Positions 42,520 to 64,000 of a DNA stretch of 64,000 nt are shown piece by piece; position 1 is the first letter of the stretch; each line of letters starts with the position of its first letter. Source of the stretch: Lytechinus pictus (Eukaryota); the NCBI RefSeq assembly GCF_037042905.1, contig NC_087254.1, positions 11,842,001 through 11,906,000 of the forward strand. Reading direction: 5' to 3'. Under the pieces are notes generated by a model. The model saw only the letters and a list, made by a program, of their open reading frames with translations, was not told where the DNA came from and did no database searches. A program made the position numbers and the translations under genes.

Positions 42520-42573
42520 ACCCAATCTCGACGTTTCGACAAGTGTGTTCTTGTCGTCCTCAGGAGAATGAGC
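42520..42573 (-). ncRNA. Hammerhead ribozyme copy (minus arm, terminal)
   Basis: Reverse complement of the same motif. Confidence 0.9.
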
Positions 42574-42842
42574 AAAGTTTGTAAAAGCAGGCCTTATATA
42601 CTCTGTCGAAGTGCCGTATGCACGGTATCTCGCAGGGTACATGTCTCTGATTGGCTAGATAGGTCACATGACATCCACATATGCGGACGTGGGTGACAAC
42701 ACACAAATTGGGCGCGCAAAACCAGCGACGACCGGAAATTGCTGTCAGTTATCATTCCCGCTAGGATTAGCATTAATGACAAAAGTCACCACTTCCGCCC
42801 ATACACTGCAGTGCTCACACGTGTGTGGAACGTCCGGGTAGG

Positions 42843-45266: not shown

Positions 45267-45345
45267 GGCGAAGAAGAATAGTGTAGTAGGTTTCACGGTA
45301 CACCATGTATTCTTTCTTGGGCATATGTTGGTCCTGAAAAGGACC

Positions 45346-45399
45346 ACCCAATCTCGACGTTTCGACAAGTGTGTTCTTGTCGTCCTCAGGAGAATGAGC
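45346..45399 (-). ncRNA. Hammerhead ribozyme copy
   Basis: Reverse complement of the same motif. Confidence 0.9.
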
Positions 45400-45668
45400 A
45401 AAGTTTGTAAAAGCAGGCCTTATATACTCTGTCGAAGTGCCGTATGCACGGTATCTCGCAGGGTACATGTCTCTGATTGGCTAGATAGGTCACATGACAT
45501 CCACATATGCGGACGTGGGTGACAACACACAAATTGGGCGCGCAAAACCAGCGACGACCGGAAATTGCTGTCAGTTATCATTCCCGCTAGGATTAGCATT
45601 AATGACAAAAGTCACCACTTCCGCCCATACACTGCAGTGCTCACACGTGTGTGGAACGTCCGGGTAGG

Positions 45669-48092
45669 CTAATTAGGCAAATTAGCCCCTTTGTCTAGAA
45701 CGGTAAGCCAGATATTGCTGAGTTGGAGGCCGCTGTCTTGAGGAACAGTGTTATGTTCCTCAATCTCCAACGCTTCTCTGACTCTCCGTTGATACCAGTA
45801 GGGGACACGGGTGACTAGTCTACTCTCATCCCAAAGAATCCGGTGATCATGCGTATGGGCATGATCGATGATTGCAGACCTCTCCCTCTCGTCTCTCCTA
45901 CCATGGGCCTTGTGTTCCTTAATCCGAGTGTTGAAGGAACGACCCGTCTCTCCGATGTAAACTTTACCGCATTCACAGGGAATTCGGTAAACTCCAGGGA
46001 GGTCCTTGGAGTTGCGCTTGTCCTTATGTGTAGTGAGGGCAGATTGAAGCTTATTTGAGGAACTATGACGAACCTCAATGTCGGCTTCTCTCAAAATCCT
46101 CTGAATTTTGTGAGAGGCTGCTCCCAGATATGGAAGAACGACTCTCGCCTTGGGTTGTCCTGCACGAGGGTTCCGCGAGGGGGGAAGCTCAGTGCAGATC
46201 TTGTGTGAGGGGTAGTTGTTACATTTCAAAACACGTTTGATATGCTCAAGCTCACCTCTCAGGTGGATCTGGTCACTAACCTCATGCGCTCGTTTGACTA
46301 ACGTCTTGTTGATGGATCTCAGCACTGATGGGTGGTGGAATGAACGATAGTTCAAGTACCGATCAGTGTGAGTAGGTTTCCGATAAACCTGATGGGATAG
46401 GGATCCCTGTGCCGTCCTCGTAATCTTTGTATCAAGAAAGGGGATAGACCCCTCATTCTCCATTTCCATGGTGAACTTGATACACTCGTGTTGAGAGTTG
46501 AGGTGCTGTAAGAAATTGCTAGTTTCCTCAGCACCGTGTTGCCAAACCACAAAAGTGTCGTCCACATATCTAAGCCACACTTTGGGTTTGTGGGTTGCTG
46601 ACTGGAGAGCCGTCTCCTCGAAATGTTCCATGAACATGTTGGCTACCACTGGGGACAGGGGAGACCCCATGGCAGCCCCTTCCGTTTGCCTGTAGAATGT
46701 GTCTCTCCATCTGAAAGAGGTGGAATTGAGGCACATCTCAAGCAGGTCATGGATCTCTAGAGGAGACAACTGTGTCCTGTCAGGGAGAGTTCTGTCAAAT
46801 TTCAATCTCTCAAGGATGATGGCGCAAGCATCCTTAACTGGTACACTTGTGAACAATGACTCAACATCAAAGCTGATGAGGAGGTCATTGTTAGAGACGT
46901 TCATCTGACAGATCTGCTCAACGAAATGTTTAGAGTTTCTCACGTGATGCACGCCCTGACCAACAAGAGGCTGTAAGATGTAAGTCAGATGCTGAGCCAG
47001 TGCGTACGTGGGAGATCCTCTAGTAGACACAATAGGTCTGAGTGGAGTGTCTGGTTTATGAATCTTCGGTTGCCCAAAGATTATGGGACATAGACCAGAC
47101 GAGCTCCGGAGTTGTCGGTAAATGGGTCTAGACAAGACATCCTTTCTCTGGAGAGAGAGGAGCTTATCATTAACCCTACGTTCGATGGCCGGCGTGGGGT
47201 CTCTAGGAAGTTTCCTATAGGTCCCCGAATCCAGTAATCTTTGAACCTTGGTCTCATAATCCAATCTGTCCATCACAACAGTAGCATTACCCTTGTCTGC
47301 CTTGAGAATATGAATGGAGTTATCCTCTCGGAGACTAGCAAGGCCTGACTTCTCGGCTTTGGTGAGGTTGGGCCGAGGTGGGTTAACCGAAGTCAGTACT
47401 TGTGAGATTTGGATACGCACTGTGTCTGATTGAGACCGAGTAAGATGTCTGAGGCTGGGTTCAATCTTCTGGATGAATTCTTTTCGGTTTACTTGCTTAG
47501 GAGCCATAGCAAAATTAAGTCCCAATGAGAGGACCTGATGTTCATTCTCAGACAACTGACGTTGACTGAGGTTGACAACAGTTTTGCTAGGATGCAAGTT
47601 GTGTCTGGGCTGGCGGTTGTGTCTCGGCTGGCGGTTGTGTCTCGGCTGGTGTTTGTTGAAACGGGAAGGACGGATCAGTTTCTCAAACTTCCTCACTTGT
47701 TTGGACTTAGTTGTCTCAAAAACGAAGTGGCTGGAAGATTTGATGAAACGATCGATTTTACCCCAATCCTTGCTCGAGAGCTTTGACTTTAGGTATTCTT
47801 CCGATGTTTCAACAAAAGGTTGAAGTTGTCTGAGCTGGTTATGGACGTGTCTGATCCTCTCTCTGATGAGACTCTCAGAAGCATGTCTAAGAACCTGCTC
47901 CGCTCGTCTGGAACGGACAGGTGCATGGAGCACCAATCCGCGGGGGATAACCCCTGAATCCCTGCACCTTTTGAGAAAGGTGAGATGGTTGACAAATCTG
48001 GCTTCCTTGATCCTGTTCCGCTGTAGTCTTCTGGTGTGCTGGAACGTCTGCTCCCCGTAGAGACGAATGATATAATTTCTGAAGGTTTCCAT
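45669..48092 (-). CDS. PLE RT + GIY-YIG, intact copy
   Basis: Translation identical to the 42843 copy. Confidence 0.96.
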   Translation of the reverse strand: METFRNYIIRLYGEQTFQHTRRLQRNRIKEARFVNHLTFLKRCRDSGVIPRGLVLHAPVRSRRAEQVLRHASESLIRERIRHVHNQLRQLQPFVETSEEYLKSKLSSKDWGKIDRFIKSSSHFVFETTKSKQVRKFEKLIRPSRFNKHQPRHNRQPRHNRQPRHNLHPSKTVVNLSQRQLSENEHQVLSLGLNFAMAPKQVNRKEFIQKIEPSLRHLTRSQSDTVRIQISQVLTSVNPPRPNLTKAEKSGLASLREDNSIHILKADKGNATVVMDRLDYETKVQRLLDSGTYRKLPRDPTPAIERRVNDKLLSLQRKDVLSRPIYRQLRSSSGLCPIIFGQPKIHKPDTPLRPIVSTRGSPTYALAQHLTYILQPLVGQGVHHVRNSKHFVEQICQMNVSNNDLLISFDVESLFTSVPVKDACAIILERLKFDRTLPDRTQLSPLEIHDLLEMCLNSTSFRWRDTFYRQTEGAAMGSPLSPVVANMFMEHFEETALQSATHKPKVWLRYVDDTFVVWQHGAEETSNFLQHLNSQHECIKFTMEMENEGSIPFLDTKITRTAQGSLSHQVYRKPTHTDRYLNYRSFHHPSVLRSINKTLVKRAHEVSDQIHLRGELEHIKRVLKCNNYPSHKICTELPPSRNPRAGQPKARVVLPYLGAASHKIQRILREADIEVRHSSSNKLQSALTTHKDKRNSKDLPGVYRIPCECGKVYIGETGRSFNTRIKEHKAHGRRDERERSAIIDHAHTHDHRILWDESRLVTRVPYWYQRRVREALEIEEHNTVPQDSGLQLSNIWLTVLDKGANLPN

Positions 48093-48171
48093 GGCGAAGA
48101 AGAATAGTGTAGTAGGTTTCACGGTACACCATGTATTCTTTCTTGGGCATATGTTGGTCCTGAAAAGGACC

Positions 48172-48225
48172 ACCCAATCTCGACGTTTCGACAAGTGTGT
48201 TCTTGTCGTCCTCAGGAGAATGAGC
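48172..48225 (-). ncRNA. Hammerhead ribozyme copy
   Basis: Reverse complement of the same motif. Confidence 0.9.
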
Positions 48226-48494
48226 AAAGTTTGTAAAAGCAGGCCTTATATACTCTGTCGAAGTGCCGTATGCACGGTATCTCGCAGGGTACATGTCTCT
48301 GATTGGCTAGATAGGTCACATGACATCCACATATGCGGACGTGGGTGACAACACACAAATTGGGCGCGCAAAACCAGCGACGACCGGAAATTGCTGTCAG
48401 TTATCATTCCCGCTAGGATTAGCATTAATGACAAAAGTCACCACTTCCGCCCATACACTGCAGTGCTCACACGTGTGTGGAACGTCCGGGTAGG

Positions 48495-50918
48495 CTAATT
48501 AGGCAAATTAGCCCCTTTGTCTAGAACGGTAAGCCAGATATTGCTGAGTTGGAGGCCGCTGTCTTGAGGAACAGTGTTATGTTCCTCAATCTCCAACGCT
48601 TCTCTGACTCTCCGTTGATACCAGTAGGGGACACGGGTGACTAGTCTACTCTCATCCCAAAGAATCCGGTGATCATGCGTATGGGCATGATCGATGATTG
48701 CAGACCTCTCCCTCTCGTCTCTCCTACCATGGGCCTTGTGTTCCTTAATCCGAGTGTTGAAGGAACGACCCGTCTCTCCGATGTAAACTTTACCGCATTC
48801 ACAGGGAATTCGGTAAACTCCAGGGAGGTCCTTGGAGTTGCGCTTGTCCTTATGTGTAGTGAGGGCAGATTGAAGCTTATTTGAGGAACTATGACGAACC
48901 TCAATGTCGGCTTCTCTCAAAATCCTCTGAATTTTGTGAGAGGCTGCTCCCAGATATGGAAGAACGACTCTCGCCTTGGGTTGTCCTGCACGAGGGTTCC
49001 GCGAGGGGGGAAGCTCAGTGCAGATCTTGTGTGAGGGGTAGTTGTTACATTTCAAAACACGTTTGATATGCTCAAGCTCACCTCTCAGGTGGATCTGGTC
49101 ACTAACCTCATGCGCTCGTTTGACTAACGTCTTGTTGATGGATCTCAGCACTGATGGGTGGTGGAATGAACGATAGTTCAAGTACCGATCAGTGTGAGTA
49201 GGTTTCCGATAAACCTGATGGGATAGGGATCCCTGTGCCGTCCTCGTAATCTTTGTATCAAGAAAGGGGATAGACCCCTCATTCTCCATTTCCATGGTGA
49301 ACTTGATACACTCGTGTTGAGAGTTGAGGTGCTGTAAGAAATTGCTAGTTTCCTCAGCACCGTGTTGCCAAACCACAAAAGTGTCGTCCACATATCTAAG
49401 CCACACTTTGGGTTTGTGGGTTGCTGACTGGAGAGCCGTCTCCTCGAAATGTTCCATGAACATGTTGGCTACCACTGGGGACAGGGGAGACCCCATGGCA
49501 GCCCCTTCCGTTTGCCTGTAGAATGTGTCTCTCCATCTGAAAGAGGTGGAATTGAGGCACATCTCAAGCAGGTCATGGATCTCTAGAGGAGACAACTGTG
49601 TCCTGTCAGGGAGAGTTCTGTCAAATTTCAATCTCTCAAGGATGATGGCGCAAGCATCCTTAACTGGTACACTTGTGAACAATGACTCAACATCAAAGCT
49701 GATGAGGAGGTCATTGTTAGAGACGTTCATCTGACAGATCTGCTCAACGAAATGTTTAGAGTTTCTCACGTGATGCACGCCCTGACCAACAAGAGGCTGT
49801 AAGATGTAAGTCAGATGCTGAGCCAGTGCGTACGTGGGAGATCCTCTAGTAGACACAATAGGTCTGAGTGGAGTGTCTGGTTTATGAATCTTCGGTTGCC
49901 CAAAGATTATGGGACATAGACCAGACGAGCTCCGGAGTTGTCGGTAAATGGGTCTAGACAAGACATCCTTTCTCTGGAGAGAGAGGAGCTTATCATTAAC
50001 CCTACGTTCGATGGCCGGCGTGGGGTCTCTAGGAAGTTTCCTATAGGTCCCCGAATCCAGTAATCTTTGAACCTTGGTCTCATAATCCAATCTGTCCATC
50101 ACAACAGTAGCATTACCCTTGTCTGCCTTGAGAATATGAATGGAGTTATCCTCTCGGAGACTAGCAAGGCCTGACTTCTCGGCTTTGGTGAGGTTGGGCC
50201 GAGGTGGGTTAACCGAAGTCAGTACTTGTGAGATTTGGATACGCACTGTGTCTGATTGAGACCGAGTAAGATGTCTGAGGCTGGGTTCAATCTTCTGGAT
50301 GAATTCTTTTCGGTTTACTTGCTTAGGAGCCATAGCAAAATTAAGTCCCAATGAGAGGACCTGATGTTCATTCTCAGACAACTGACGTTGACTGAGGTTG
50401 ACAACAGTTTTGCTAGGATGCAAGTTGTGTCTGGGCTGGCGGTTGTGTCTCGGCTGGCGGTTGTGTCTCGGCTGGTGTTTGTTGAAACGGGAAGGACGGA
50501 TCAGTTTCTCAAACTTCCTCACTTGTTTGGACTTAGTTGTCTCAAAAACGAAGTGGCTGGAAGATTTGATGAAACGATCGATTTTACCCCAATCCTTGCT
50601 CGAGAGCTTTGACTTTAGGTATTCTTCCGATGTTTCAACAAAAGGTTGAAGTTGTCTGAGCTGGTTATGGACGTGTCTGATCCTCTCTCTGATGAGACTC
50701 TCAGAAGCATGTCTAAGAACCTGCTCCGCTCGTCTGGAACGGACAGGTGCATGGAGCACCAATCCGCGGGGGATAACCCCTGAATCCCTGCACCTTTTGA
50801 GAAAGGTGAGATGGTTGACAAATCTGGCTTCCTTGATCCTGTTCCGCTGTAGTCTTCTGGTGTGCTGGAACGTCTGCTCCCCGTAGAGACGAATGATATA
50901 ATTTCTGAAGGTTTCCAT
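48495..50918 (-). CDS. PLE RT + GIY-YIG, intact copy
   Basis: Translation identical to the 42843 copy. Confidence 0.96.
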   Translation of the reverse strand: METFRNYIIRLYGEQTFQHTRRLQRNRIKEARFVNHLTFLKRCRDSGVIPRGLVLHAPVRSRRAEQVLRHASESLIRERIRHVHNQLRQLQPFVETSEEYLKSKLSSKDWGKIDRFIKSSSHFVFETTKSKQVRKFEKLIRPSRFNKHQPRHNRQPRHNRQPRHNLHPSKTVVNLSQRQLSENEHQVLSLGLNFAMAPKQVNRKEFIQKIEPSLRHLTRSQSDTVRIQISQVLTSVNPPRPNLTKAEKSGLASLREDNSIHILKADKGNATVVMDRLDYETKVQRLLDSGTYRKLPRDPTPAIERRVNDKLLSLQRKDVLSRPIYRQLRSSSGLCPIIFGQPKIHKPDTPLRPIVSTRGSPTYALAQHLTYILQPLVGQGVHHVRNSKHFVEQICQMNVSNNDLLISFDVESLFTSVPVKDACAIILERLKFDRTLPDRTQLSPLEIHDLLEMCLNSTSFRWRDTFYRQTEGAAMGSPLSPVVANMFMEHFEETALQSATHKPKVWLRYVDDTFVVWQHGAEETSNFLQHLNSQHECIKFTMEMENEGSIPFLDTKITRTAQGSLSHQVYRKPTHTDRYLNYRSFHHPSVLRSINKTLVKRAHEVSDQIHLRGELEHIKRVLKCNNYPSHKICTELPPSRNPRAGQPKARVVLPYLGAASHKIQRILREADIEVRHSSSNKLQSALTTHKDKRNSKDLPGVYRIPCECGKVYIGETGRSFNTRIKEHKAHGRRDERERSAIIDHAHTHDHRILWDESRLVTRVPYWYQRRVREALEIEEHNTVPQDSGLQLSNIWLTVLDKGANLPN

Positions 50919-50997
50919 GGCGAAGAAGAATAGTGTAGTAGGTTTCACGGTACACCATGTATTCTTTCTTGGGCATATGTTGGTCCTGAAAAGGACC

Positions 50998-51051
50998 ACC
51001 CAATCTCGACGTTTCGACAAGTGTGTTCTTGTCGTCCTCAGGAGAATGAGC
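50998..51051 (-). ncRNA. Hammerhead ribozyme copy
   Basis: Reverse complement of the same motif. Confidence 0.9.
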
Positions 51052-51320
51052 AAAGTTTGTAAAAGCAGGCCTTATATACTCTGTCGAAGTGCCGTATGCA
51101 CGGTATCTCGCAGGGTACATGTCTCTGATTGGCTAGATAGGTCACATGACATCCACATATGCGGACGTGGGTGACAACACACAAATTGGGCGCGCAAAAC
51201 CAGCGACGACCGGAAATTGCTGTCAGTTATCATTCCCGCTAGGATTAGCATTAATGACAAAAGTCACCACTTCCGCCCATACACTGCAGTGCTCACACGT
51301 GTGTGGAACGTCCGGGTAGG

Positions 51321-53266
51321 CTAATTAGGCAAATTAGCCCCTTTGTCTAGAACGGTAAGCCAGATATTGCTGAGTTGGAGGCCGCTGTCTTGAGGAACAG
51401 TGTTATGTTCCTCAATCTCCAACGCTTCTCTGACTCTCCGTTGATACCAGTAGGGGACACGGGTGACTAGTCTACTCTCATCCCAAAGAATCCGGTGATC
51501 ATGCGTATGGGCATGATCGATGATTGCAGACCTCTCCCTCTCGTCTCTCCTACCATGGGCCTTGTGTTCCTTAATCCGAGTGTTGAAGGAACGACCCGTC
51601 TCTCCGATGTAAACTTTACCGCATTCACAGGGAATTCGGTAAACTCCAGGGAGGTCCTTGGAGTTGCGCTTGTCCTTATGTGTAGTGAGGGCAGATTGAA
51701 GCTTATTTGAGGAACTATGACGAACCTCAATGTCGGCTTCTCTCAAAATCCTCTGAATTTTGTGAGAGGCTGCTCCCAGATATGGAAGAACGACTCTCGC
51801 CTTGGGTTGTCCTGCACGAGGGTTCCGCGAGGGGGGAAGCTCAGTGCAGATCTTGTGTGAGGGGTAGTTGTTACATTTCAAAACACGTTTGATATGCTCA
51901 AGCTCACCTCTCAGGTGGATCTGGTCACTAACCTCATGCGCTCGTTTGACTAACGTCTTGTTGATGGATCTCAGCACTGATGGGTGGTGGAATGAACGAT
52001 AGTTCAAGTACCGATCAGTGTGAGTAGGTTTCCGATAAACCTGATGGGATAGGGATCCCTGTGCCGTCCTCGTAATCTTTGTATCAAGAAAGGGGATAGA
52101 CCCCTCATTCTCCATTTCCATGGTGAACTTGATACACTCGTGTTGAGAGTTGAGGTGCTGTAAGAAATTGCTAGTTTCCTCAGCACCGTGTTGCCAAACC
52201 ACAAAAGTGTCGTCCACATATCTAAGCCACACTTTGGGTTTGTGGGTTGCTGACTGGAGAGCCGTCTCCTCGAAATGTTCCATGAACATGTTGGCTACCA
52301 CTGGGGACAGGGGAGACCCCATGGCAGCCCCTTCCGTTTGCCTGTAGAATGTGTCTCTCCATCTGAAAGAGGTGGAATTGAGGCACATCTCAAGCAGGTC
52401 ATGGATCTCTAGAGGAGACAACTGTGTCCTGTCAGGGAGAGTTCTGTCAAATTTCAATCTCTCAAGGATGATGGCGCAAGCATCCTTAACTGGTACACTT
52501 GTGAACAATGACTCAACATCAAAGCTGATGAGGAGGTCATTGTTAGAGACGTTCATCTGACAGATCTGCTCAACGAAATGTTTAGAGTTTCTCACGTGAT
52601 GCACGCCCTGACCAACAAGAGGCTGTAAGATGTAAGTCAGATGCTGAGCCAGTGCGTACGTGGGAGATCCTCTAGTAGACACAATAGGTCTGAGTGGAGT
52701 GTCTGGTTTATGAATCTTCGGTTGCCCAAAGATTATGGGACATAGACCAGACGAGCTCCGGAGTTGTCGGTAAATGGGTCTAGACAAGACATCCTTTCTC
52801 TGGAGAGAGAGGAGCTTATCATTAACCCTACGTTCGATGGCCGGCGTGGGGTCTCTAGGAAGTTTCCTATAGGTCCCCGAATCCAGTAATCTTTGAACCT
52901 TGGTCTCATAATCCAATCTGTCCATCACAACAGTAGCATTACCCTTGTCTGCCTTGAGAATATGAATGGAGTTATCCTCTCGGAGACTAGCAAGGCCTGA
53001 CTTCTCGGCTTTGGTGAGGTTGGGCCGAGGTGGGTTAACCGAAGTCAGTACTTGTGAGATTTGGATACGCACTGTGTCTGATTGAGACCGAGTAAGATGT
53101 CTGAGGCTGGGTTCAATCTTCTGGATGAATTCTTTTCGGTTTACTTGCTTAGGAGCCATAGCAAAATTAAGTCCCAATGAGAGGACCTGATGTTCATTCT
53201 CAGACAACTGACGTTGACTGAGGTTGACAACAGTTTTGCTAGGATGCAAGTTGTGTCTGGGCTGGC
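51321..53266 (-). pseudogene. 5'-truncated PLE ORF (RT and endonuclease retained), open across the inversion junction to an ATG at 53369
   Basis: Homology stops inside the 18-bp QPRHNR repeat at 53266. The ORF track shows a 682-aa chimeric frame 51321-53369. Confidence 0.9.
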
Positions 53267-53367
53267 TGTCGAAACGTCGAGATTGGGTGGTCCTTTTCAG
53301 GACCAACATATGCCCAAGAAAGAATACATGGTGTACCGTGAAACCTACTACACTATTCTTCTTCGCC

Positions 53368-55792
53368 ATGGAAACCTTCAGAAATTATATCATTCGTCTC
53401 TACGGGGAGCAGACGTTCCAGCACACCAGAAGACTACAGCGGAACAGGATCAAGGAAGCCAGATTTGTCAACCATCTCACCTTTCTCAAAAGGTGCAGGG
53501 ATTCAGGGGTTATCCCCCGCGGATTGGTGCTCCATGCACCTGTCCGTTCCAGACGAGCGGAGCAGGTTCTTAGACATGCTTCTGAGAGTCTCATCAGAGA
53601 GAGGATCAGACACGTCCATAACCAGCTCAGACAACTTCAACCTTTTGTTGAAACATCGGAAGAATACCTAAAGTCAAAGCTCTCGAGCAAGGATTGGGGT
53701 AAAATCGATCGTTTCATCAAATCTTCCAGCCACTTCGTTTTTGAGACAACTAAGTCCAAACAAGTGAGGAAGTTTGAGAAACTGATCCGTCCTTCCCGTT
53801 TCAACAAACACCAGCCGAGACACAACCGCCAGCCGAGACACAACCGCCAGCCCAGACACAACTTGCATCCTAGCAAAACTGTTGTCAACCTCAGTCAACG
53901 TCAGTTGTCTGAGAATGAACATCAGGTCCTCTCATTGGGACTTAATTTTGCTATGGCTCCTAAGCAAGTAAACCGAAAAAGAATTCATCCAGAAGATTGA
54001 ACCCAGCCTCAGACATCTTACTCGGTCTCAATCAGACACAGTGCGTATCCAAATCTCACAAGTACTGACTTCGGTTAACCCACCTCGGCCCAACCTCACC
54101 AAAGCCGAGAAGTCAGGCCTTGCTAGTCTCCGAGAGGATAACTCCATTCATATTCTCAAGGCAGACAAGGGTAATGCTACTGTTGTGATGGACAGATTGG
54201 ATTATGAGACCAAGGTTCAAAGATTACTGGATTCGGGGACCTATAGGAAACTTCCTAGAGACCCCACGCCGGCCATCGAACGTAGGGTTAATGATAAGCT
54301 CCTCTCTCTCCAGAGAAAGGATGTCTTGTCTAGACCCATTTACCGACAACTCCGGAGCTCGTCTGGTCTATGTCCCATAATCTTTGGGCAACCGAAGATT
54401 CATAAACCAGACACTCCACTCAGACCTATTGTGTCTACTAGAGGATCTCCCACGTACGCACTGGCTCAGCATCTGACTTACATCTTACAGCCTCTTGTTG
54501 GTCAGGGCGTGCATCACATGAGAAACTCTAAACATTTCGTTGAGCAGATCTGTCAGATGAACGTCTCTAACAATGACCTCCTCATCAGCTTTGATGTTGA
54601 GTCATTGTTCACAAGTGTACCAGTTAAGGATGCTTGCGCCATCATCCTTGAGAGATTGAAATTTGACAGAACTCTCCCTGACAGGACACAGTTGTCTCCT
54701 CTAGAGATCCATGACCTGCTTGAGATGTGCCTCAATTCCACCTCTTTCAGATGGAGAGACACATTCTACAGGCAAACGGAAGGGGCTGCCATGGGGTCTC
54801 CCCTGTCCCCAGTGGTAGCCAACATGTTCATGGAACATTTCGAGGAGACGGCTCTCCAGTCAGCAACCCACAAACCCAAAGTGTGGCTTAGATATGTGGA
54901 CGACACTTTTGTGGTTTGGCAACACGGTGCTGAGGAAACTAGCAATTTCTTACAGCACCTCAACTCTCAACACGAGTGTATCAAGTTCACCATGGAAATG
55001 GAGAATGAGGGGTCTATCCCCTTTCTTGATACAAAGATTACGAGGACGGCACAGGGATCCCTATCCCATCAGGTTTATCGGAAACCTACTCACACTGATC
55101 GGTACTTGAACTATCGTTCATTCCACCACCCATCAGTGCTGAGATCCATCAACAAGACGTTAGTCAAACGAGCGCATGAGGTTAGTGACCAGATCCACCT
55201 GAGAGGTGAGCTTGAGCATATCAAACGTGTTTTGAAATGTAACAACTACCCCTCACACAAGATCTGCACTGAGCTTCCCCCCTCGCGGAACCCTCGTGCA
55301 GGACAACCCAAGGCGAGAGTCGTTCTTCCATATCTGGGAGCAGCCTCTCACAAAATTCAGAGGATTTTGAGAGAAGCCGACATTGAGGTTCGTCATAGTT
55401 CCTCAAATAAGCTTCAATCTGCCCTCACTACACATAAGGACAAGCGCAACTCCAAGGACCTCCCTGGAGTTTACCGAATTCCCTGTGAATGCGGTAAAGT
55501 TTACATCGGAGAGACGGGTCGTTCCTTCAACACTCGGATTAAGGAACACAAGGCCCATGGTAGGAGAGACGAGAGGGAGAGGTCTGCAATCATCGATCAT
55601 GCCCATACGCATGATCACCGGATTCTTTGGGATGAGAGTAGACTAGTCACCCGTGTCCCCTACTGGTATCAACGGAGAGTCAGAGAAGCGTTGGAGATTG
55701 AGGAACATAACACTGTTCCTCAAGACAGCGGCCTCCAACTCAGCAATATCTGGCTTACCGTTCTAGACAAAGGGGCTAATTTGCCTAATTAG
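53368..55792 (+). pseudogene. PLE RT + GIY-YIG copy with +1 frameshift
   Basis: CGAAAAAG (5 A) at about 53976-53980 versus CGAAAAG in the other copies splits the ORF into 258 aa and 583 aa. Also a V>M change (CACATG vs CACGTG) near 54518. The extra A could be a homopolymer consensus error. Confidence 0.8.
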
Positions 55793-55829
55793 CCTACCCG
55801 GACGTTCCACACACGTGTGAGCACTGCAG

Positions 55830-56069
55830 TGTATGGGCGGAAGTGGTGACTTTTGTCATTAATGCTAATCCTAGCGGGAATGATAACTGACAGCAATTTC
55901 CGGTCGTCGCTGGTTTTGCGCGCCCAATTTGTGTGTTGTCACCCACGTCCGCATATGTGGATGTCATGTGACCTATCTAGCCAATCAGAGACATGTACCC
56001 TGCGAGATACCGTGCATACGGCACTTCGACAGAGTATATAAGGCCTGCTTTTACAAACTTTGCTCATTC
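55830..56069 (+). promoter_or_regulatory. Putative Pol II promoter in the PLE pseudo-LTR (repeated at every unit boundary)
   Basis: GGGCGGAAGT (GC/ETS-like) near 55835, CCAAT at 55981, TATATAAG at 56035, and Inr-like TCATTC whose A (56066) lies 31 nt after the TATA start. Confidence 0.7.
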
Positions 56070-56115
56070 TCCTGAGGACGACAAGAACACACTTGTCGAA
56101 ACGTCGAGATTGGGT
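56062..56115 (+). ncRNA. Minimal type I hammerhead ribozyme (PLE-type); predicted cleavage after 56105
   Basis: GCTCAT-TCTC (stem I), CTGAGGA core, one extra C, GACAAG-aacaca-CTTGTC (stem II), GAAA, CG, TC^, then GAGA-T-TGGGT (stem I partner). Stem III is reduced to the palindrome ACGT. Confidence 0.9.
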
Positions 56116-56194
56116 GGTCCTTTTCAGGACCAACATATGCCCAAGAAAGAATACATGGTGTACCGTGAAACCTACTACACTATTCTTCTTCGCC

Positions 56195-58600
56195 ATGGAA
56201 ACCTTCAGAAATTATATCATTCGTCTCTACGGGGAGCAGACGTTCCAGCACACCAGAAGACTACAGCGGAACAGGATCAAGGAAGCCAGATTTGTCAACC
56301 ATCTCACCTTTCTCAAAAGGTGCAGGGATTCAGGGGTTATCCCCCGCGGATTGGTGCTCCATGCACCTGTCCGTTCCAGACGAGCGGAGCAGGTTCTTAG
56401 ACATGCTTCTGAGAGTCTCATCAGAGAGAGGATCAGACACGTCCATAACCAGCTCAGACAACTTCAACCTTTTGTTGAAACATCGGAAGAATACCTAAAG
56501 TCAAAGCTCTCGAGCAAGGATTGGGGTAAAATCGATCGTTTCATCAAATCTTCCAGCCACTTCGTTTTTGAGACAACTAAGTCCAAACAAGTGAGGAAGT
56601 TTGAGAAACTGATCCGTCCTTCCCGTTTCAACAAACACCAGCCGAGACACAACCGCCAGCCCAGACACAACTTGCATCCTAGCAAAACTGTTGTCAACCT
56701 CAGTCAACGTCAGTTGTCTGAGAATGAACATCAGGTCCTCTCATTGGGACTTAATTTTGCTATGGCTCCTAAGCAAGTAAACCGAAAAGAATTCATCCAG
56801 AAGATTGAACCCAGCCTCAGACATCTTACTCGGTCTCAATCAGACACAGTGCGTATCCAAATCTCACAAGTACTGACTTCGGTTAACCCACCTCGGCCCA
56901 ACCTCACCAAAGCCGAGAAGTCAGGCCTTGCTAGTCTCCGAGAGGATAACTCCATTCATATTCTCAAGGCAGACAAGGGTAATGCTACTGTTGTGATGGA
57001 CAGATTGGATTATGAGACCAAGGTTCAAAGATTACTGGATTCGGGGACCTATAGGAAACTTCCTAGAGACCCCACGCCGGCCATCGAACGTAGGGTTAAT
57101 GATAAGCTCCTCTCTCTCCAGAGAAAGGATGTCTTGTCTAGACCCATTTACCGACAACTCCGGAGCTCGTCTGGTCTATGTCCCATAATCTTTGGGCAAC
57201 CGAAGATTCATAAACCAGACACTCCACTCAGACCTATTGTGTCTACTAGAGGATCTCCCACGTACGCACTGGCTCAGCATCTGACTTACATCTTACAGCC
57301 TCTTGTTGGTCAGGGCGTGCATCACGTGAGAAACTCTAAACATTTCGTTGAGCAGATCTGTCAGATGAACGTCTCTAACAATGACCTCCTCATCAGCTTT
57401 GATGTTGAGTCATTGTTCACAAGTGTACCAGTTAAGGATGCTTGCGCCATCATCCTTGAGAGATTGAAATTTGACAGAACTCTCCCTGACAGGACACAGT
57501 TGTCTCCTCTAGAGATCCATGACCTGCTTGAGATGTGCCTCAATTCCACCTCTTTCAGATGGAGAGACACATTCTACAGGCAAACGGAAGGGGCTGCCAT
57601 GGGGTCTCCCCTGTCCCCAGTGGTAGCCAACATGTTCATGGAACATTTCGAGGAGACGGCTCTCCAGTCAGCAACCCACAAACCCAAAGTGTGGCTTAGA
57701 TATGTGGACGACACTTTTGTGGTTTGGCAACACGGTGCTGAGGAAACTAGCAATTTCTTACAGCACCTCAACTCTCAACACGAGTGTATCAAGTTCACCA
57801 TGGAAATGGAGAATGAGGGGTCTATCCCCTTTCTTGATACAAAGATTACGAGGACGGCACAGGGATCCCTATCCCATCAGGTTTATCGGAAACCTACTCA
57901 CACTGATCGGTACTTGAACTATCGTTCATTCCACCACCCATCAGTGCTGAGATCCATCAACAAGACGTTAGTCAAACGAGCGCATGAGGTTAGTGACCAG
58001 ATCCACCTGAGAGGTGAGCTTGAGCATATCAAACGTGTTTTGAAATGTAACAACTACCCCTCACACAAGATCTGCACTGAGCTTCCCCCCTCGCGGAACC
58101 CTCGTGCAGGACAACCCAAGGCGAGAGTCGTTCTTCCATATCTGGGAGCAGCCTCTCACAAAATTCAGAGGATTTTGAGAGAAGCCGACATTGAGGTTCG
58201 TCATAGTTCCTCAAATAAGCTTCAATCTGCCCTCACTACACATAAGGACAAGCGCAACTCCAAGGACCTCCCTGGAGTTTACCGAATTCCCTGTGAATGC
58301 GGTAAAGTTTACATCGGAGAGACGGGTCGTTCCTTCAACACTCGGATTAAGGAACACAAGGCCCATGGTAGGAGAGACGAGAGGGAGAGGTCTGCAATCA
58401 TCGATCATGCCCATACGCATGATCACCGGATTCTTTGGGATGAGAGTAGACTAGTCACCCGTGTCCCCTACTGGTATCAACGGAGAGTCAGAGAAGCGTT
58501 GGAGATTGAGGAACATAACACTGTTCCTCAAGACAGCGGCCTCCAACTCAGCAATATCTGGCTTACCGTTCTAGACAAAGGGGCTAATTTGCCTAATTAG
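56195..58600 (+). CDS. PLE RT + GIY-YIG, intact, lacking one 18-bp repeat (801 aa)
   Basis: Same protein with two rather than three QPRHN units. Confidence 0.95.
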   Translation: METFRNYIIRLYGEQTFQHTRRLQRNRIKEARFVNHLTFLKRCRDSGVIPRGLVLHAPVRSRRAEQVLRHASESLIRERIRHVHNQLRQLQPFVETSEEYLKSKLSSKDWGKIDRFIKSSSHFVFETTKSKQVRKFEKLIRPSRFNKHQPRHNRQPRHNLHPSKTVVNLSQRQLSENEHQVLSLGLNFAMAPKQVNRKEFIQKIEPSLRHLTRSQSDTVRIQISQVLTSVNPPRPNLTKAEKSGLASLREDNSIHILKADKGNATVVMDRLDYETKVQRLLDSGTYRKLPRDPTPAIERRVNDKLLSLQRKDVLSRPIYRQLRSSSGLCPIIFGQPKIHKPDTPLRPIVSTRGSPTYALAQHLTYILQPLVGQGVHHVRNSKHFVEQICQMNVSNNDLLISFDVESLFTSVPVKDACAIILERLKFDRTLPDRTQLSPLEIHDLLEMCLNSTSFRWRDTFYRQTEGAAMGSPLSPVVANMFMEHFEETALQSATHKPKVWLRYVDDTFVVWQHGAEETSNFLQHLNSQHECIKFTMEMENEGSIPFLDTKITRTAQGSLSHQVYRKPTHTDRYLNYRSFHHPSVLRSINKTLVKRAHEVSDQIHLRGELEHIKRVLKCNNYPSHKICTELPPSRNPRAGQPKARVVLPYLGAASHKIQRILREADIEVRHSSSNKLQSALTTHKDKRNSKDLPGVYRIPCECGKVYIGETGRSFNTRIKEHKAHGRRDERERSAIIDHAHTHDHRILWDESRLVTRVPYWYQRRVREALEIEEHNTVPQDSGLQLSNIWLTVLDKGANLPN

Positions 58601-58869
58601 CCTACCCGGACGTTCCACACACGTGTGAGCACTGCAGTGTATGGGCGGAAGTGGTGACTTTTGTCATTAATGCTAATCCTAGCGGGAATGATAACTGACA
58701 GCAATTTCCGGTCGTCGCTGGTTTTGCGCGCCCAATTTGTGTGTTGTCACCCACGTCCGCATATGTGGATGTCATGTGACCTATCTAGCCAATCAGAGAC
58801 ATGTACCCTGCGAGATACCGTGCATACGGCACTTCGACAGAGTATATAAGGCCTGCTTTTACAAACTTT

Positions 58870-58923
58870 GCTCATTCTCCTGAGGACGACAAGAACACAC
58901 TTGTCGAAACGTCGAGATTGGGT
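58870..58923 (+). ncRNA. Hammerhead ribozyme copy; cleavage after 58913
   Basis: Identical motif. Confidence 0.9.
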
Positions 58924-59002
58924 GGTCCTTTTCAGGACCAACATATGCCCAAGAAAGAATACATGGTGTACCGTGAAACCTACTACACTATTCTTCTTCG
59001 CC

Positions 59003-61426
59003 ATGGAAACCTTCAGAAATTATATCATTCGTCTCTACGGGGAGCAGACGTTCCAGCACACCAGAAGACTACAGCGGAACAGGATCAAGGAAGCCAGATT
59101 TGTCAACCATCTCACCTTTCTCAAAAGGTGCAGGGATTCAGGGGTTATCCCCCGCGGATTGGTGCTCCATGCACCTGTCCGTTCCAGACGAGCGGAGCAG
59201 GTTCTTAGACATGCTTCTGAGAGTCTCATCAGAGAGAGGATCAGACACGTCCATAACCAGCTCAGACAACTTCAACCTTTTGTTGAAACATCGGAAGAAT
59301 ACCTAAAGTCAAAGCTCTCGAGCAAGGATTGGGGTAAAATCGATCGTTTCATCAAATCTTCCAGCCACTTCGTTTTTGAGACAACTAAGTCCAAACAAGT
59401 GAGGAAGTTTGAGAAACTGATCCGTCCTTCCCGTTTCAACAAACACCAGCCGAGACACAACCGCCAGCCGAGACACAACCGCCAGCCCAGACACAACTTG
59501 CATCCTAGCAAAACTGTTGTCAACCTCAGTCAACGTCAGTTGTCTGAGAATGAACATCAGGTCCTCTCATTGGGACTTAATTTTGCTATGGCTCCTAAGC
59601 AAGTAAACCGAAAAGAATTCATCCAGAAGATTGAACCCAGCCTCAGACATCTTACTCGGTCTCAATCAGACACAGTGCGTATCCAAATCTCACAAGTACT
59701 GACTTCGGTTAACCCACCTCGGCCCAACCTCACCAAAGCCGAGAAGTCAGGCCTTGCTAGTCTCCGAGAGGATAACTCCATTCATATTCTCAAGGCAGAC
59801 AAGGGTAATGCTACTGTTGTGATGGACAGATTGGATTATGAGACCAAGGTTCAAAGATTACTGGATTCGGGGACCTATAGGAAACTTCCTAGAGACCCCA
59901 CGCCGGCCATCGAACGTAGGGTTAATGATAAGCTCCTCTCTCTCCAGAGAAAGGATGTCTTGTCTAGACCCATTTACCGACAACTCCGGAGCTCGTCTGG
60001 TCTATGTCCCATAATCTTTGGGCAACCGAAGATTCATAAACCAGACACTCCACTCAGACCTATTGTGTCTACTAGAGGATCTCCCACGTACGCACTGGCT
60101 CAGCATCTGACTTACATCTTACAGCCTCTTGTTGGTCAGGGCGTGCATCACGTGAGAAACTCTAAACATTTCGTTGAGCAGATCTGTCAGATGAACGTCT
60201 CTAACAATGACCTCCTCATCAGCTTTGATGTTGAGTCATTGTTCACAAGTGTACCAGTTAAGGATGCTTGCGCCATCATCCTTGAGAGATTGAAATTTGA
60301 CAGAACTCTCCCTGACAGGACACAGTTGTCTCCTCTAGAGATCCATGACCTGCTTGAGATGTGCCTCAATTCCACCTCTTTCAGATGGAGAGACACATTC
60401 TACAGGCAAACGGAAGGGGCTGCCATGGGGTCTCCCCTGTCCCCAGTGGTAGCCAACATGTTCATGGAACATTTCGAGGAGACGGCTCTCCAGTCAGCAA
60501 CCCACAAACCCAAAGTGTGGCTTAGATATGTGGACGACACTTTTGTGGTTTGGCAACACGGTGCTGAGGAAACTAGCAATTTCTTACAGCACCTCAACTC
60601 TCAACACGAGTGTATCAAGTTCACCATGGAAATGGAGAATGAGGGGTCTATCCCCTTTCTTGATACAAAGATTACGAGGACGGCACAGGGATCCCTATCC
60701 CATCAGGTTTATCGGAAACCTACTCACACTGATCGGTACTTGAACTATCGTTCATTCCACCACCCATCAGTGCTGAGATCCATCAACAAGACGTTAGTCA
60801 AACGAGCGCATGAGGTTAGTGACCAGATCCACCTGAGAGGTGAGCTTGAGCATATCAAACGTGTTTTGAAATGTAACAACTACCCCTCACACAAGATCTG
60901 CACTGAGCTTCCCCCCTCGCGGAACCCTCGTGCAGGACAACCCAAGGCGAGAGTCGTTCTTCCATATCTGGGAGCAGCCTCTCACAAAATTCAGAGGATT
61001 TTGAGAGAAGCCGACATTGAGGTTCGTCATAGTTCCTCAAATAAGCTTCAATCTGCCCTCACTACACATAAGGACAAGCGCAACTCCAAGGACCTCCCTG
61101 GAGTTTACCGAATTCCCTGTGAATGCGGTAAAGTTTACATCGGAGAGACGGGTCGTTCCTTCAACACTCGGATTAAGGAACACAAGGCCCATGGTAGGAG
61201 AGACGAGAGGGAGAGGTCTGCAATCATCGATCATGCCCATACGCATGATCACCGGATTCTTTGGGATGAGAGTAGACTAGTCACCCGTGTCCCCTACTGG
61301 TATCAACGGAGAGTCAGAGAAGCGTTGGAGATTGAGGAACATAACACTGTTCCTCAAGACAGCGGCCTCCAACTCAGCAATATCTGGCTTACCGTTCTAG
61401 ACAAAGGGGCTAATTTGCCTAATTAG
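59003..61426 (+). CDS. PLE RT + GIY-YIG, intact copy
   Basis: Translation identical to the minus-arm copies. Confidence 0.96.
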   Translation: METFRNYIIRLYGEQTFQHTRRLQRNRIKEARFVNHLTFLKRCRDSGVIPRGLVLHAPVRSRRAEQVLRHASESLIRERIRHVHNQLRQLQPFVETSEEYLKSKLSSKDWGKIDRFIKSSSHFVFETTKSKQVRKFEKLIRPSRFNKHQPRHNRQPRHNRQPRHNLHPSKTVVNLSQRQLSENEHQVLSLGLNFAMAPKQVNRKEFIQKIEPSLRHLTRSQSDTVRIQISQVLTSVNPPRPNLTKAEKSGLASLREDNSIHILKADKGNATVVMDRLDYETKVQRLLDSGTYRKLPRDPTPAIERRVNDKLLSLQRKDVLSRPIYRQLRSSSGLCPIIFGQPKIHKPDTPLRPIVSTRGSPTYALAQHLTYILQPLVGQGVHHVRNSKHFVEQICQMNVSNNDLLISFDVESLFTSVPVKDACAIILERLKFDRTLPDRTQLSPLEIHDLLEMCLNSTSFRWRDTFYRQTEGAAMGSPLSPVVANMFMEHFEETALQSATHKPKVWLRYVDDTFVVWQHGAEETSNFLQHLNSQHECIKFTMEMENEGSIPFLDTKITRTAQGSLSHQVYRKPTHTDRYLNYRSFHHPSVLRSINKTLVKRAHEVSDQIHLRGELEHIKRVLKCNNYPSHKICTELPPSRNPRAGQPKARVVLPYLGAASHKIQRILREADIEVRHSSSNKLQSALTTHKDKRNSKDLPGVYRIPCECGKVYIGETGRSFNTRIKEHKAHGRRDERERSAIIDHAHTHDHRILWDESRLVTRVPYWYQRRVREALEIEEHNTVPQDSGLQLSNIWLTVLDKGANLPN

Positions 61427-61695
61427 CCTACCCGGACGTTCCACACACGTGTGAGCACTGCAGTGTATGGGCGGAAGTGGTGACTTTTGTCATTAATGCT
61501 AATCCTAGCGGGAATGATAACTGACAGCAATTTCCGGTCGTCGCTGGTTTTGCGCGCCCAATTTGTGTGTTGTCACCCACGTCCGCATATGTGGATGTCA
61601 TGTGACCTATCTAGCCAATCAGAGACATGTACCCTGCGAGATACCGTGCATACGGCACTTCGACAGAGTATATAAGGCCTGCTTTTACAAACTTT

Positions 61696-61749
61696 GCTCA
61701 TTCTCCTGAGGACGACAAGAACACACTTGTCGAAACGTCGAGATTGGGT
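61696..61749 (+). ncRNA. Hammerhead ribozyme copy; cleavage after 61739
   Basis: Identical motif. Confidence 0.9.
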
Positions 61750-61949
61750 GGTCCTTTTCAGGACCAACATATGCCCAAGAAAGAATACATGGTGTACCGT
61801 GAAACCTACTACACTATTAAGATTCTTGCAGAATTGAGGTCTTATTGATGTTGATATGTGGTGATATTTTGATGATTATTGAATATGAACTTTCTGAGAT
61901 TTGCTGTCCACAAGAAATGGAGGAAATAAAAATAAGAAATAAAAATAAA

Positions 61950-64000
61950 CTAGATTTTAATTCGTCATGCGGACGAATTAGGTGGTCTGTCCTTATTCTC
62001 GCCATCATGATCACTATTACCATGTTCAAGCAGATCAATATGATCTTCATGATGACAACAGAATGTTCATTAAGGATGGAATACTTGTGAAAGACGGGAG
62101 ATGATAAAGCACAGTGAAAAGTGTCTCTTTGATATATGAAAATACATGTGATATGAAAATAGTAATTATAATCTGTTTAATCTTGCTAAATTTTAACTTT
62201 CATACCTTTTAATTATCATAAAGGATCATGTACGAGGTGGTAAAAAGAAAAAAAAAAGAAAAAAAAAATCATCTTGTTCACCCCCAGGACTCGAACCTGC
62301 GCCCCCGAGAACTCAAGTCAAGTGCGTTATCCATTGAGCCACGATATTCCCCATAGAGATTACACGTTCCCATAGAGATTACACGGAAGCAAATTTGAGA
62401 ATTAAAAATGCAATTTTGCAAGCGAAAAACGGGCATGATCCTGGCATCTGATCGAAAAAAAAGGGTGACACTTTCAAAAGCTTAGAATCTCAGCTACATC
62501 ATACCAAAAGCTCAGGGATAACTAACAAGAAACAATGGAGATATAGCTCACGAAATAGAGGAATGTAGAATCTAGTTTTGAGAAAAAGGCATGTCCCATA
62601 GAGATTACACGTAAAATGAGGAAAAATGACATGCCTCTTTTCATCGCAATTTTACACCATGATGCGTTTTTCAAAATGAAAATTCATGTTTACTGACGAG
62701 AAAGAGTACATTCTAAACTACAACATATCGAAATCTGGGCGAAAAATGATCAATATTCACGGAGTTATGATCAAATTTGCATAAATTTGATGACGTCATT
62801 TTTGAAAATATGAAATTTTCAGTTTAGGCGCAATTTTGATGACGTCATGATCAAATTGAGGGACAATGGTGACATGAAATCAAATCTACAAGTCATACTC
62901 TATCGATATATGAAAAAAATATTGGGGTCAACGGACTATTTAAAGAGGTATAGTGAATTTTCAATTGCCCCTTTTTTTTGGCCATATATGGCCTGTAGTG
63001 AGAGCTCGCGCGCACACGTGCTGCAAAGTTTAACAGGTGATAATTTCGTTATTACTTGTCGTAGAAGGTTGATTAATGTATCAAATTGTTCAGAATTATA
63101 TTATCGATGCATTGATATAAAAAAATTGGCGATTCTATGTTGGAAGATGCAATTACGCGCGAAAACGCGCGCGCATGTGCGTGCGCGCGTTTTTTTGCAA
63201 AATGCTTAAAATGGCCTGAAACGTATGGAAAATTAATTTGGAACGAATTTGAGCATTTTAAAATTTTAATGCGCGCGTACGTGCGCGTCGAGGTGCACGC
63301 GCGGAATTTGATGAAATTTTTAGTTGACCGTTGACCTGAAGTTGATGTATACCAAATATAGTTGATTTTTGATGACTCGTTATCGAGATATGATAATGAC
63401 CTGATTTTTACAAAATGGCGCCTGGATAAAGTCACGATGACCTAATGACCTTGAAAAAAGGAGGGCACACTTCCAAAAGCTTAGAATCTCAGCTACATCA
63501 TACCAAAAGCTCAGGGATAACTAACAAGAAAAAATGGAGATATAGCTCACGAAATAGAGGAATGTAGAATCTAGTTTTGAGAAAAAGTCATGTCCCATAG
63601 AGATTACATGCAAAATGAGGAAAAATGACATGTCTTTATTATTTGCAATTTTTGAGGATGATCCGTTTATTATGATGAAAATTAAAGGCAATAACTCAGA
63701 AAGAGTAAGACCTAAGCTACAACATATTAAAAATTGGGTGAAAATTGACGAATATTCACGGAGTTAGAGCCAGATTTGCATAATTATAATGACGTCATAA
63801 TACGCAAAATGGATATTTTGACTTCCGACGCCATTTTGATGACGTCATAATATAATTAAGGGTCAAATGAGACATGAAATTATAACTCTAGTTCATACTC
63901 TATCAAAATATGAAAAAAAAATTCGGGGTCCCCATGCGTTCTGAAAAGCTACAGCGGATTTTCTATAGGCATGTTTTTGCCCATATATGGCCTATAGTAA
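61950..64000 (-). mobile_element. Second Helitron-like element of the same family with an internal ~1-kb tandem duplication; runs off the window
   Basis: Same hairpin + CTAG terminus. The block AAAGCTTAGAATCTCAGCTACATCATACC recurs at about 62477 and about 63476. Confidence 0.65.

Follow-up and report, generated by a model that had tools for sequence, protein, structure and literature searches.

The self-cleaving RNAs closest to the motif analyzed here are the minimal hammerhead ribozymes (min-HHRs) of Penelope-like elements (PLEs). In these ribozymes, according to PMC4209133, helix II is long, a base between A9 and position 10.1 is unpaired, the G10.1-C11.1 pair is invariant and 15.2/16.2 is palindromic, four traits that emerged unforced from the search of Cervera and de la Peña; sea urchins are not named in the searched text of that 2014 paper. 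PLEs are organized as tandem or partial-tandem copies that form pseudo-long terminal repeats (pseudo-LTRs) together with an inverted, 5'-truncated copy, and they carry a tail, a 30- to 40-bp extension at one end only (PMC8557442). In the Anolis element PAc, two internal reverse-transcription start sites account for this tail, both target strands are cleaved and extended, and ATT targets are preferred (PMC11167929). A different class of ribozyme, resembling that of hepatitis delta virus (HDV), is found in non-LTR retrotransposons, where it trims upstream or cotranscribed RNA and may aid translation (PMC6765202). Here we describe a PLE of the sea urchin Lytechinus pictus that lies in a 64,000-nucleotide stretch of contig NC_087254.1 (assembly GCF_037042905.1, positions 11,842,001 to 11,906,000), referred to below as the window, in whose coordinates positions are given. 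Its hammerhead has all four traits listed in PMC4209133.

Hammerhead motif in a sea urchin PLE

The reference copy of the motif lies on the plus strand, and its parts and the other copies in the window are as follows.

56063-56114, plus strand: minimal type I hammerhead, predicted cut after C56105
56063-56071, plus strand: helix I, 5' strand, CTCATTCTC
56072-56078, plus strand: core CTGAGGA, followed by one unpaired C at 56079
56080-56085 and 56092-56097, plus strand: helix II, GACAAG/CTTGTC, 6 bp, loop AACACA
56098-56101, plus strand: GAAA, followed by CG, T and C17 (56105)
56106-56114, plus strand: helix I, 3' strand, GAGATTGGG
58871-58922, plus strand: identical hammerhead, cut after 58913
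61697-61748, plus strand: identical hammerhead, cut after 61739
50999-51050, minus strand: hammerhead, predicted cut after C51008
48173-48224, 45347-45398 and 42521-42572, minus strand: identical hammerheads, cuts after 48182, 45356 and 42530
53267-53278, plus strand: partial hammerhead of 12 nt, helix II 3' strand through GTC, without the CUGANGA box

The catalytic core (C3-U4-G5-A6-N7-G8-A9, G12-A13-A14, A15.1-U16.1 and H17) is present at 56072-56105, in agreement with an initial annotation of this DNA that had recognized here a CUGAGGA/GAAA core, a 6-bp stem II, a palindromic ACGU and a GUC. The TGGTCCT-TTTC-AGGACCA hairpin that it had also described is found as (T)GGTCCT-TTTC-AGGACC(A) at 56115-56132, directly 3' of the hammerhead. 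The nine positions of helix I in the window form eight pairs (one of them G.U) and one U.U mismatch, and the minimum-energy fold of the monomer retains helices I and II. Helix III consists of A-C-G-U with a zero-nucleotide loop and therefore cannot close inside one molecule. When two copies were folded with RNAcofold, the minimum swapped helices between the strands, the true dimer being a pseudoknot in two-strand notation and hence unscorable. We take the motif to be a genuine minimal hammerhead with a loop-less helix III, of the PLE type, and predict that it cleaves itself after H17 as a dimer.

A search with a 38-nt core pattern produced seven exact matches in the window, starting at 42526, 45352, 48178 and 51004 on the minus strand and at 56072, 58880 and 61706 on the plus strand, against none in 100 shuffles. 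With the 12-nt remnant at 53267-53278, these correspond to the seven complete copies and one partial copy counted previously. A structural min-HHR descriptor (core boxes, helix II of at least 5 bp, palindromic 15.2/16.2 and helix I of at least 3 bp) picked out the same seven sites and no others in the window, and gave no hit in 200 composition-preserving 64-kb shuffles. The Rfam hammerhead models, a check suggested in the initial annotation, were run on the window, a 401-nt slice and six related loci and gave no match there at gathering score or at E<=10. This null is expected if the models demand a helix III hairpin, in which case it is a blind spot rather than counter-evidence, and the check is therefore uninformative. 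A chance match to a loose hammerhead descriptor would likewise leave the Rfam models without a hit; however, the shuffles, the covariation described below and the constant pseudo-LTR position of the motif in relatives effectively refute this explanation, whose probability we consider negligible.

Selection on the RNA structure

Related elements were fetched from two metagenome contigs (67% protein identity), S. purpuratus (52%), Lytechinus variegatus (56%), Diadema (55%), Patiria (53%) and Anolis (PAc, 39%), the last being the only non-echinoderm outgroup; two decayed copies were also included. The hammerhead motif was at the same pseudo-LTR position in every relative. In the nine-sequence alignment, helices I and II were 91% paired, compared with 25-42% when the 3' partner was slid, and 7 of the 10 pairs had changed on both sides. 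Helix II was paired in 96% of cells, with four of six pairs changed on both sides and G10.1-C11.1 invariant (9/9); the window has GACAAG/CUUGUC at this helix, the 67% relative has GAUAAG/CUUAUC, and S. purpuratus has GGACAG/CUGUCC. The four core-proximal pairs of helix I were 83% paired, and three of them had changed on both sides. The unpaired base between A9 and 10.1, C56079 in the window, is represented by one extra base in all nine relatives. The core is invariant in seven of the nine; the exceptions, L003 (CCGGAUGA) and L007 (UUGAAGA with GGAAC), have damaged cores, look decayed and were treated as such. GAAACGU is unchanged in eight of nine aligned relatives, the decayed L007 reading GGAACGU.

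The conservation of the core together with compensatory changes in the helices, among proteins that are 39-67% identical and from urchins to Anolis, argues for long-term selection on the RNA structure. The same pattern speaks against the view that the hammerhead is a conserved passenger, or "parasitic" on PLEs (Craig et al.), its conservation reflecting only the youth of the copies. In line with that view, PAc hammerhead mutants insert normally (PMC11167929) and the PLEs called Naiads proliferate without hammerheads (PMC8557442). The window copies are also all identical and for that reason are uninformative on selection. Given the compensatory changes, we regard a mere passenger as quite improbable.

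One insertion with two arrays

The insertion and its reading frames, including those for reverse transcriptase (RT), are listed below.

42419-61818: complete Penelope-like insertion, 19.4 kb, composed of a minus array (42419-53266) and a plus array (53267-61818), head to head
42411-42418, plus strand: left target-site duplication, AAGATTCT, preceded by ATT
61819-61826, plus strand: right target-site duplication, AAGATTCT
59003-61426, plus strand: intact open reading frame (ORF), 807 amino acids, RT with C-terminal GIY-YIG
56195-58600, plus strand: ORF, 801 amino acids
50918-48495, 48092-45669 and 45266-42843, minus strand: ORF copies
53368-55792, plus strand: frameshifted ORF
53266-51321, minus strand: 5'-truncated ORF

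The element is a canonical endonuclease-encoding Penelope-like retrotransposon of the Penelope/Poseidon type and a very young sea-urchin copy. Its ORF matched Pfam RVT_1 (E 1e-11) and GIY-YIG (24.2 bits, cutoff 22.6), thus containing both RT and the endonuclease domain, and its homologues share this domain set. The closest database protein, 97% identical, is from L. pictus, and PLE ORFs from other urchins, starfish, a crinoid, insects and Anolis are more distantly homologous. The RT ORF starts with GCCATGG at 56195, 90 nt past the cut, and a GCCAUGG start is kept in the relatives. An ATG at 56137, directly after the hairpin, was rejected as the ORF start, being out of frame with the RT ORF. 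This AUG and a second out-of-frame one at 56155, both between the cut and the ORF start, open an overlapping upstream ORF of 88 codons that is not conserved in the relatives.

The copies do not belong to a single array but form two arrays of opposite orientation, with a head-to-head junction at 53266/53267. In the minus array, three complete units are accompanied by one that is 5'-truncated and by a 3' extension of 111 nt; the plus array comprises the 12-nt hammerhead remnant, which marks its 5' truncation point at the junction, three units and a 79-nt extension. Tandem copies serving as pseudo-LTRs and an inverted 5'-truncated copy at the 5' end agree with the PLE architecture mentioned above. 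The block has a GC content of 0.47-0.48, compared with ~0.33 in the flanks, and contains no N. One 8-mer, AAGATTCT, abuts both of its outer ends, and since this single 8-bp duplication brackets the entire 19.4 kb, the block is a single insertion; two independent insertions as the source of the two arrays were rejected on the same ground.

The unit length of 2826 nt given initially holds, from cut to cut, for four units, and the other two measure 2808 nt and 2827 nt. The four are base-identical, and no substitutions separate any of the units. The 2808-nt unit has one fewer copy of an 18-nt minisatellite encoding a PRHNRQ repeat, in the second plus-strand ORF (~56638 versus 59446-59497), and the 2827-nt unit has an A-run that is one base longer, at ~53976-53980, which frameshifts the first plus-strand ORF. 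Both differences could be due to polymerase slippage or assembly error.

Direct repeats that are 80-90% alike lie on both sides of the insertion (41412-41711, 62456-62755 and 63455-63754, with a right spacing of 999 nt), which suggests that the element landed in or near another repeat family. Elsewhere in the window, a degenerate tandem array with an 81- to 94-nt period (11268-12151) and a long (ATAG)n microsatellite (40326-40739) appear unrelated to the element.

Insertion ends past the cut site

Two features of the reference unit concern the 3' ends.

56182-56216, plus strand: positions homologous to the insertion 3' termini (+76-79 and +111), the 32-35 nt between them being the "tail"
56153-56172, plus strand: conserved block ACATGGTGTACCGTGAAACC, shared by every PLE relative examined and situated just upstream of the insertion 3' ends

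Counted from the cut, the plus array ends at +76 to +79 (61815-61818; three bases are ambiguous with the target) and the minus array at +111 (42419). The two ends differ by 32-35 nt and each is used at just one of the insertion's ends, as is characteristic of the PLE tail. An independent L. pictus copy (L012, CM073243.1, 10036-12060), which is solo, 5'-truncated and 3% diverged, stops at +76; it has its own 13-bp target duplication with a short filler at the 5' junction and falls within the limits of a gene model annotated as armadillo-repeat. A head-to-head pair in S. purpuratus (L004) has its ends close to +254 and +291, which, placed relative to the conserved ACAUGGUGUACCG block and the ORF start, correspond by homology to the two ends in the window. 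The conserved block also occurs, as ACATGGTGTACCG..AAACC, at L004 ~2959, L005 ~6233, L009 ~6015 and L013 3132 and 6027, the crinoid included, and by analogy with PAc (PMC11167929) it is probably a protein-binding or RT-initiation region.

Every mappable insertion 3' end thus lies past the cut site, which is at odds with the ribozyme-defined RNA ends proposed in the initial annotation. The inserted 3' end would rather be set by internal reverse-transcription starts next to the ACATGGTGTACCG block than by the ribozyme. The priming of both target strands, as in PAc, would account for the head-to-head double array, and the target reads ATT-AAGATTCT, matching the ATT preference reported for PAc. 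A single-event footprint with the tail on one arm only fits priming from both target strands, and the locus has the form to be expected if reverse transcription is primed by both of them, a behavior described in vitro for the Anolis element. The locus is unusually clean, being a single insertion flanked by a target duplication and free of base substitutions, and it shows together both alternative 3' ends, a head-to-head 5' junction and multi-unit arrays on both arms.

Candidate role at the 5' end

Three promoter-like elements recur in every unit and are given here for the reference copy.

55981-55985, plus strand: CCAAT box
56035-56043, plus strand: TATA box, TATATAAGG
56064-56069, plus strand: initiator-like TCATTC

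The TATA box lies 36-37 nt upstream of CUGA in all echinoid relatives. Transcription is predicted to start near A56066, inside the 5' strand of helix I. With the TATA/initiator in this position, the transcript of each unit would begin with the ribozyme, a second point against ribozyme-defined RNA ends. A related array (L001) begins exactly at GUC/GAGCAU, the slash marking the boundary, and its 44 nt upstream are similar only at chance level. This boundary at the cut site argues for cleavage in vivo and is the one that copying of a cleaved RNA to its 5' end would leave.

The promoter at the ribozyme's edge and the L001 boundary together favor 5'-end processing, and we consider it rather probable that the motif is a PLE min-HHR whose likeliest job is to process RNA 5' ends. 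In the mechanism that we propose, the TATA/initiator promoter of each unit would start transcription at the 5' edge of the ribozyme. The element RNA would then carry the hammerhead at its extreme 5' end, and a read-through transcript would have it a second time close to the 3' end. Because helix III is a loop-less ACGU, cleavage would require a second copy and a 4-bp intermolecular helix III. The PAc hammerhead needs the element protein for cleavage (PMC11167929), and by analogy a dimeric element protein, bound just downstream, would probably assist pairing here. Cleavage would then trim a capped leader of ~40 nt or upstream read-through RNA, leaving an RNA that begins at GAGAUUGGG.

Several observations weigh against this role. 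Published min-HHRs cleave poorly even as dimers (PMC4209133; PMC6765202), contrary to the efficient dimer cleavage assumed in the initial annotation, and the intermolecular helix III has only 4 bp, with a nearest-neighbor estimate of ~-1 kcal/mol after the initiation penalty. In PAc, insertion by the hammerhead mutants is normal in vitro and no RNA sequencing reads end at the cut site (PMC11167929), and Naiads thrive without a hammerhead at all (PMC8557442). An exact cut-site boundary was found in only one of about six junctions; it sits in a metagenome contig that could be chimeric, and the 5' end of the plus array in the window lies 12 nt upstream of the cut site. The hammerhead activity is itself a prediction, as is the transcription start, which was placed from consensus elements only.

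The multi-unit arrays could also have a different origin, in which two hammerheads in a read-through transcript dimerize and free one 2826-nt RNA that RtcB closes into a circle, joining the unit end ...GAAACGUC to GAGAUUGGG, and rolling-circle reverse transcription then produces the arrays. The excision and RtcB joining had been proposed in the initial annotation, whose interpretation as a whole is partly supported, and the mechanism is the standing, unproven hypothesis of the literature, published by Cervera and de la Peña in 2014 (PMC4209133); nothing in the sequence shows the release of exactly one unit and its ligation, and the insertion ends partly contradict the mechanism. Arrays of three to four base-identical units, both from one insertion event, are in agreement with a circle, on which internal RT starts would fix the 3' ends at +76-79/+111, leave the 5' ends arbitrary and carry copying beyond a single unit, and RtcB circularizes hammerhead-ended retrozyme RNAs in vitro (PMC7229834). 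However, read-through of a tandem donor, or template switching, would yield the same arrays, and the units inside one array differ by 18-nt and 1-nt indels. The L001 start at the cut implies a linear cleaved template with an uncleaved internal hammerhead, PAc can insert in vitro from a linear RNA even when the hammerhead is inactive (PMC11167929), and no evidence of circular RNA from autonomous PLEs was found in the literature examined. Taken together, these points make the circular intermediate doubtful.

Processing of the 5' end has a further competitor in translation. The ribozyme lies in the 5' untranslated region (UTR), 90 nt before the conserved GCCAUGG, and its cleavage, which would remove the cap, or its fold might promote cap-independent translation of the RT/endonuclease ORF. 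A precedent exists in PMC13725137 and in the work by Ruminski et al. 2011 that it cites: such an effect is reported for HDV-like ribozymes carried by non-LTR retrotransposons and for hammerheads located in the UTRs of some RNA viruses. Two out-of-frame AUGs nevertheless stand between the cut site and the ORF start, and a dimer-only ribozyme would be odd as a constitutive translation element, so that we think a translational function unlikely. Whichever role the hammerhead has, the element makes PLE hammerhead function testable in a laboratory organism with accessible eggs and embryos.

Possible histone-type 3' signal

As observed in the initial annotation, poly(A) signals are missing: the sense strand of the unit is entirely free of AATAAA and ATTAAA. 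In place of RNA ends defined by the ribozyme, a candidate explanation is a histone-type stem-loop and box that directly follow it.

56116-56131, plus strand: histone-mRNA-like stem-loop GGTCCT-TTTC-AGGACC, +11 to +26 past the cut
53289, 58924 and 61750, plus strand: same stem-loop
50997, 48171, 45345 and 42519 (5' ends), minus strand: same stem-loop
56142-56150, plus strand: CAAGAAAGA box, 10 nt after the stem-loop

The consensus GGYYYU-UYUN-ARRRCC is matched by stem and loop and only in part by the flanks. The window copy scored 16.9 bits with Rfam Histone3 (E 0.07; gathering score 34), the sole Rfam match in the region, and the Diadema stem-loop, which has a CCAAC flank, scored 29.1 bits (E 1e-6), also below the gathering score. 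All of the urchin and starfish PLEs that were fetched carry the hairpin, 10 to ~230 nt past the cut (L001 2784, L004 2837, L005 6125, L006 10944, L007 2597, L009 5971 and 12923), and the crinoid and Anolis elements examined lack it. The hairpin is paired in 11/11 sequences; two positions show compensatory exchanges (G-C/A-U and C-G/U-A), and one copy has a G.U pair. A GAAAGA-type box follows the hairpin by 5-13 nt in five lineages, the 9-mer CAAGAAAGA occurring also in L001 and L005, and GAAAGA in L004 and L007. CAAGAAAGA resembles the sea-urchin histone downstream element, a conserved spacer element of histone genes that presumably pairs with U7 small nuclear RNA (snRNA) (Georgiev & Birnstiel 1985); a source supporting this assignment was not found in the literature searched. 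U7 snRNA has a universally conserved UCUUU box (PMC5054213), to which the GAAAGA-type box is complementary. No histone gene is present in the window or the fetched loci.

A metagenome pattern scan for the stem-loop and box identified one locus, which is not a PLE (L011, JAAUYG010240411.1, 2136-2558). It contains a hairpin of the same sequence with canonical flanks (ACCCA), then CAAGAAAGA, and at 37.5 bits passes the Rfam gathering score. This hairpin lies 34 nt after the stop codon of a non-histone ORF, on a contig assigned to an "F54H12.2-like" gene family that is present in high copy in marine invertebrates; a neighboring ORF has a weak adenovirus-protease-like match. Judging from this contig, other mobile-looking genes may use histone-type 3' ends.

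The urchin/starfish PLE lineage might accordingly have taken over the histone 3'-end signal, an SLBP-type stem-loop with a U7-type CAAGAAAGA box, with the RNA 3' end formed by the histone mRNA machinery rather than by the ribozyme. This proposal, which is compatible with 5'-end processing by the hammerhead, is a tentative one to which we give somewhat less than even weight. The hairpin fits the consensus at the positions that are conserved in histone stem-loops, the Diadema hairpin and the same-sequence hairpin with canonical flanks score well above the window copy, the stem has two compensatory pairs and a G.U across urchin and starfish PLEs, a box complementary to the conserved UCUUU of U7 follows in five lineages, and the unit has no AAUAAA or AUUAAA. 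On the other hand, the window copy reaches only 16.9 bits of the 34, lacking an A-rich 5' flank and having AACA for ACCCA, and the paired changes would likewise be shown by a DNA palindrome bound by a dimeric factor. A GAAAGA-like motif is also present in PAc, which has no such hairpin. In every unit the signal also occurs ~50-85 nt away from the predicted start, a position at which it would cut transcripts short, and processing at the hairpin would delete the +76 to +111 region present in every inserted copy, so that such an RNA could serve only as mRNA.

The conservation of a histone-type stem-loop and box directly after the hammerhead, in urchin and starfish PLEs, is possibly new; no link between PLEs and histone stem-loops, SLBP or U7 was found in the literature searched. 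If the stem-loop and box are functional, they would explain how these PLEs manage without a poly(A) signal, and the element would be the first retrotransposon using the SLBP/U7 pathway, as far as the searched literature shows. A PLE RNA without poly(A) would then be made, stabilized or translated by the histone mRNA machinery, which is hugely active in oocytes and cleavage-stage embryos, where a transposon needs expression. It is also a possibility that the promoter, hammerhead and histone signal together make up a short, terminally redundant "R" region, giving one transcript two pairable hammerheads. Apart from these hairpins, the L. variegatus locus contains an inverted-repeat hairpin (L005 8372-8562; Rfam MIR8562, 64 bits against a gathering score of 211) that is probably a palindrome resembling miniature inverted-repeat transposable elements.

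Comparison with known systems

In replication-dependent histone mRNAs, the 3' signal (RF00032; PMC1924863) pairs a stem-loop recognized by SLBP with a downstream element to which the U7 ribonucleoprotein binds. The stem-loop in the window resembles it in its 6-bp stem, the G-C at pair 2, the U-A on top and the UUUC loop. A purine-rich box ~10 nt downstream, the 9-mer of the sea-urchin element, is a further likeness. The stem-loop differs from that signal in its setting, a PLE pseudo-LTR, where it follows the stop codon by 324 nt and occurs in the 5' UTR as well, and in the noncanonical flanks and sub-threshold Rfam score of the window copy.

The predicted 5'-terminal self-cleaving ribozyme has a parallel in the HDV-like ribozymes of R2, L1Tc and other non-LTR retrotransposons (PMC6765202); those belong to another ribozyme class, are active as monomers and occur in elements that are not tandem. 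Newt satellite 2, Schistosoma Sm-alpha and metazoan retrozymes (PMC7229834) share with the window element a short palindromic helix III and the pairing of tandem copies, and the 5'-OH and 2',3'-cyclic phosphate ends that RtcB can join are predicted here as well. In contrast, their units of 170-400 nt are noncoding and documented as circular RNAs, whereas the unit in the window is 2.8 kb long, coding and known from DNA.

Anolis PAc (PMC11167929) has an ORF 39% identical to that of the window element and likewise carries a hammerhead at the junction of pseudo-LTR and ORF. In both, insertions end ~80-110 nt past the cut, two alternative ends define the tail, the target is AT-rich with ATT, and the use of both target strands explains head-to-head copies. 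The PAc ORF starts inside the ribozyme, unlike that in the window, which starts 90 nt past the cut, and PAc has no histone-like stem-loop.

The metazoan PLE min-HHRs agree with the window hammerhead in their type I topology, CUGANGA/GAAA/UH core, long helix II (6 bp in the window) with G10.1-C11.1, unpaired base after A9, absence of a helix III loop, palindromic 15.2/16.2 and predicted dimer-only activity, and also in their location in both pseudo-LTRs of an element encoding RT and GIY-YIG. The window copies are identical to one another, whereas those described are highly variable, and helix I can extend to 9 positions in read-through RNA instead of the usual 4-5, but nothing essential differs. 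The hammerhead of L. pictus is therefore of the known PLE min-HHR kind, to which it adds only another host and family member.

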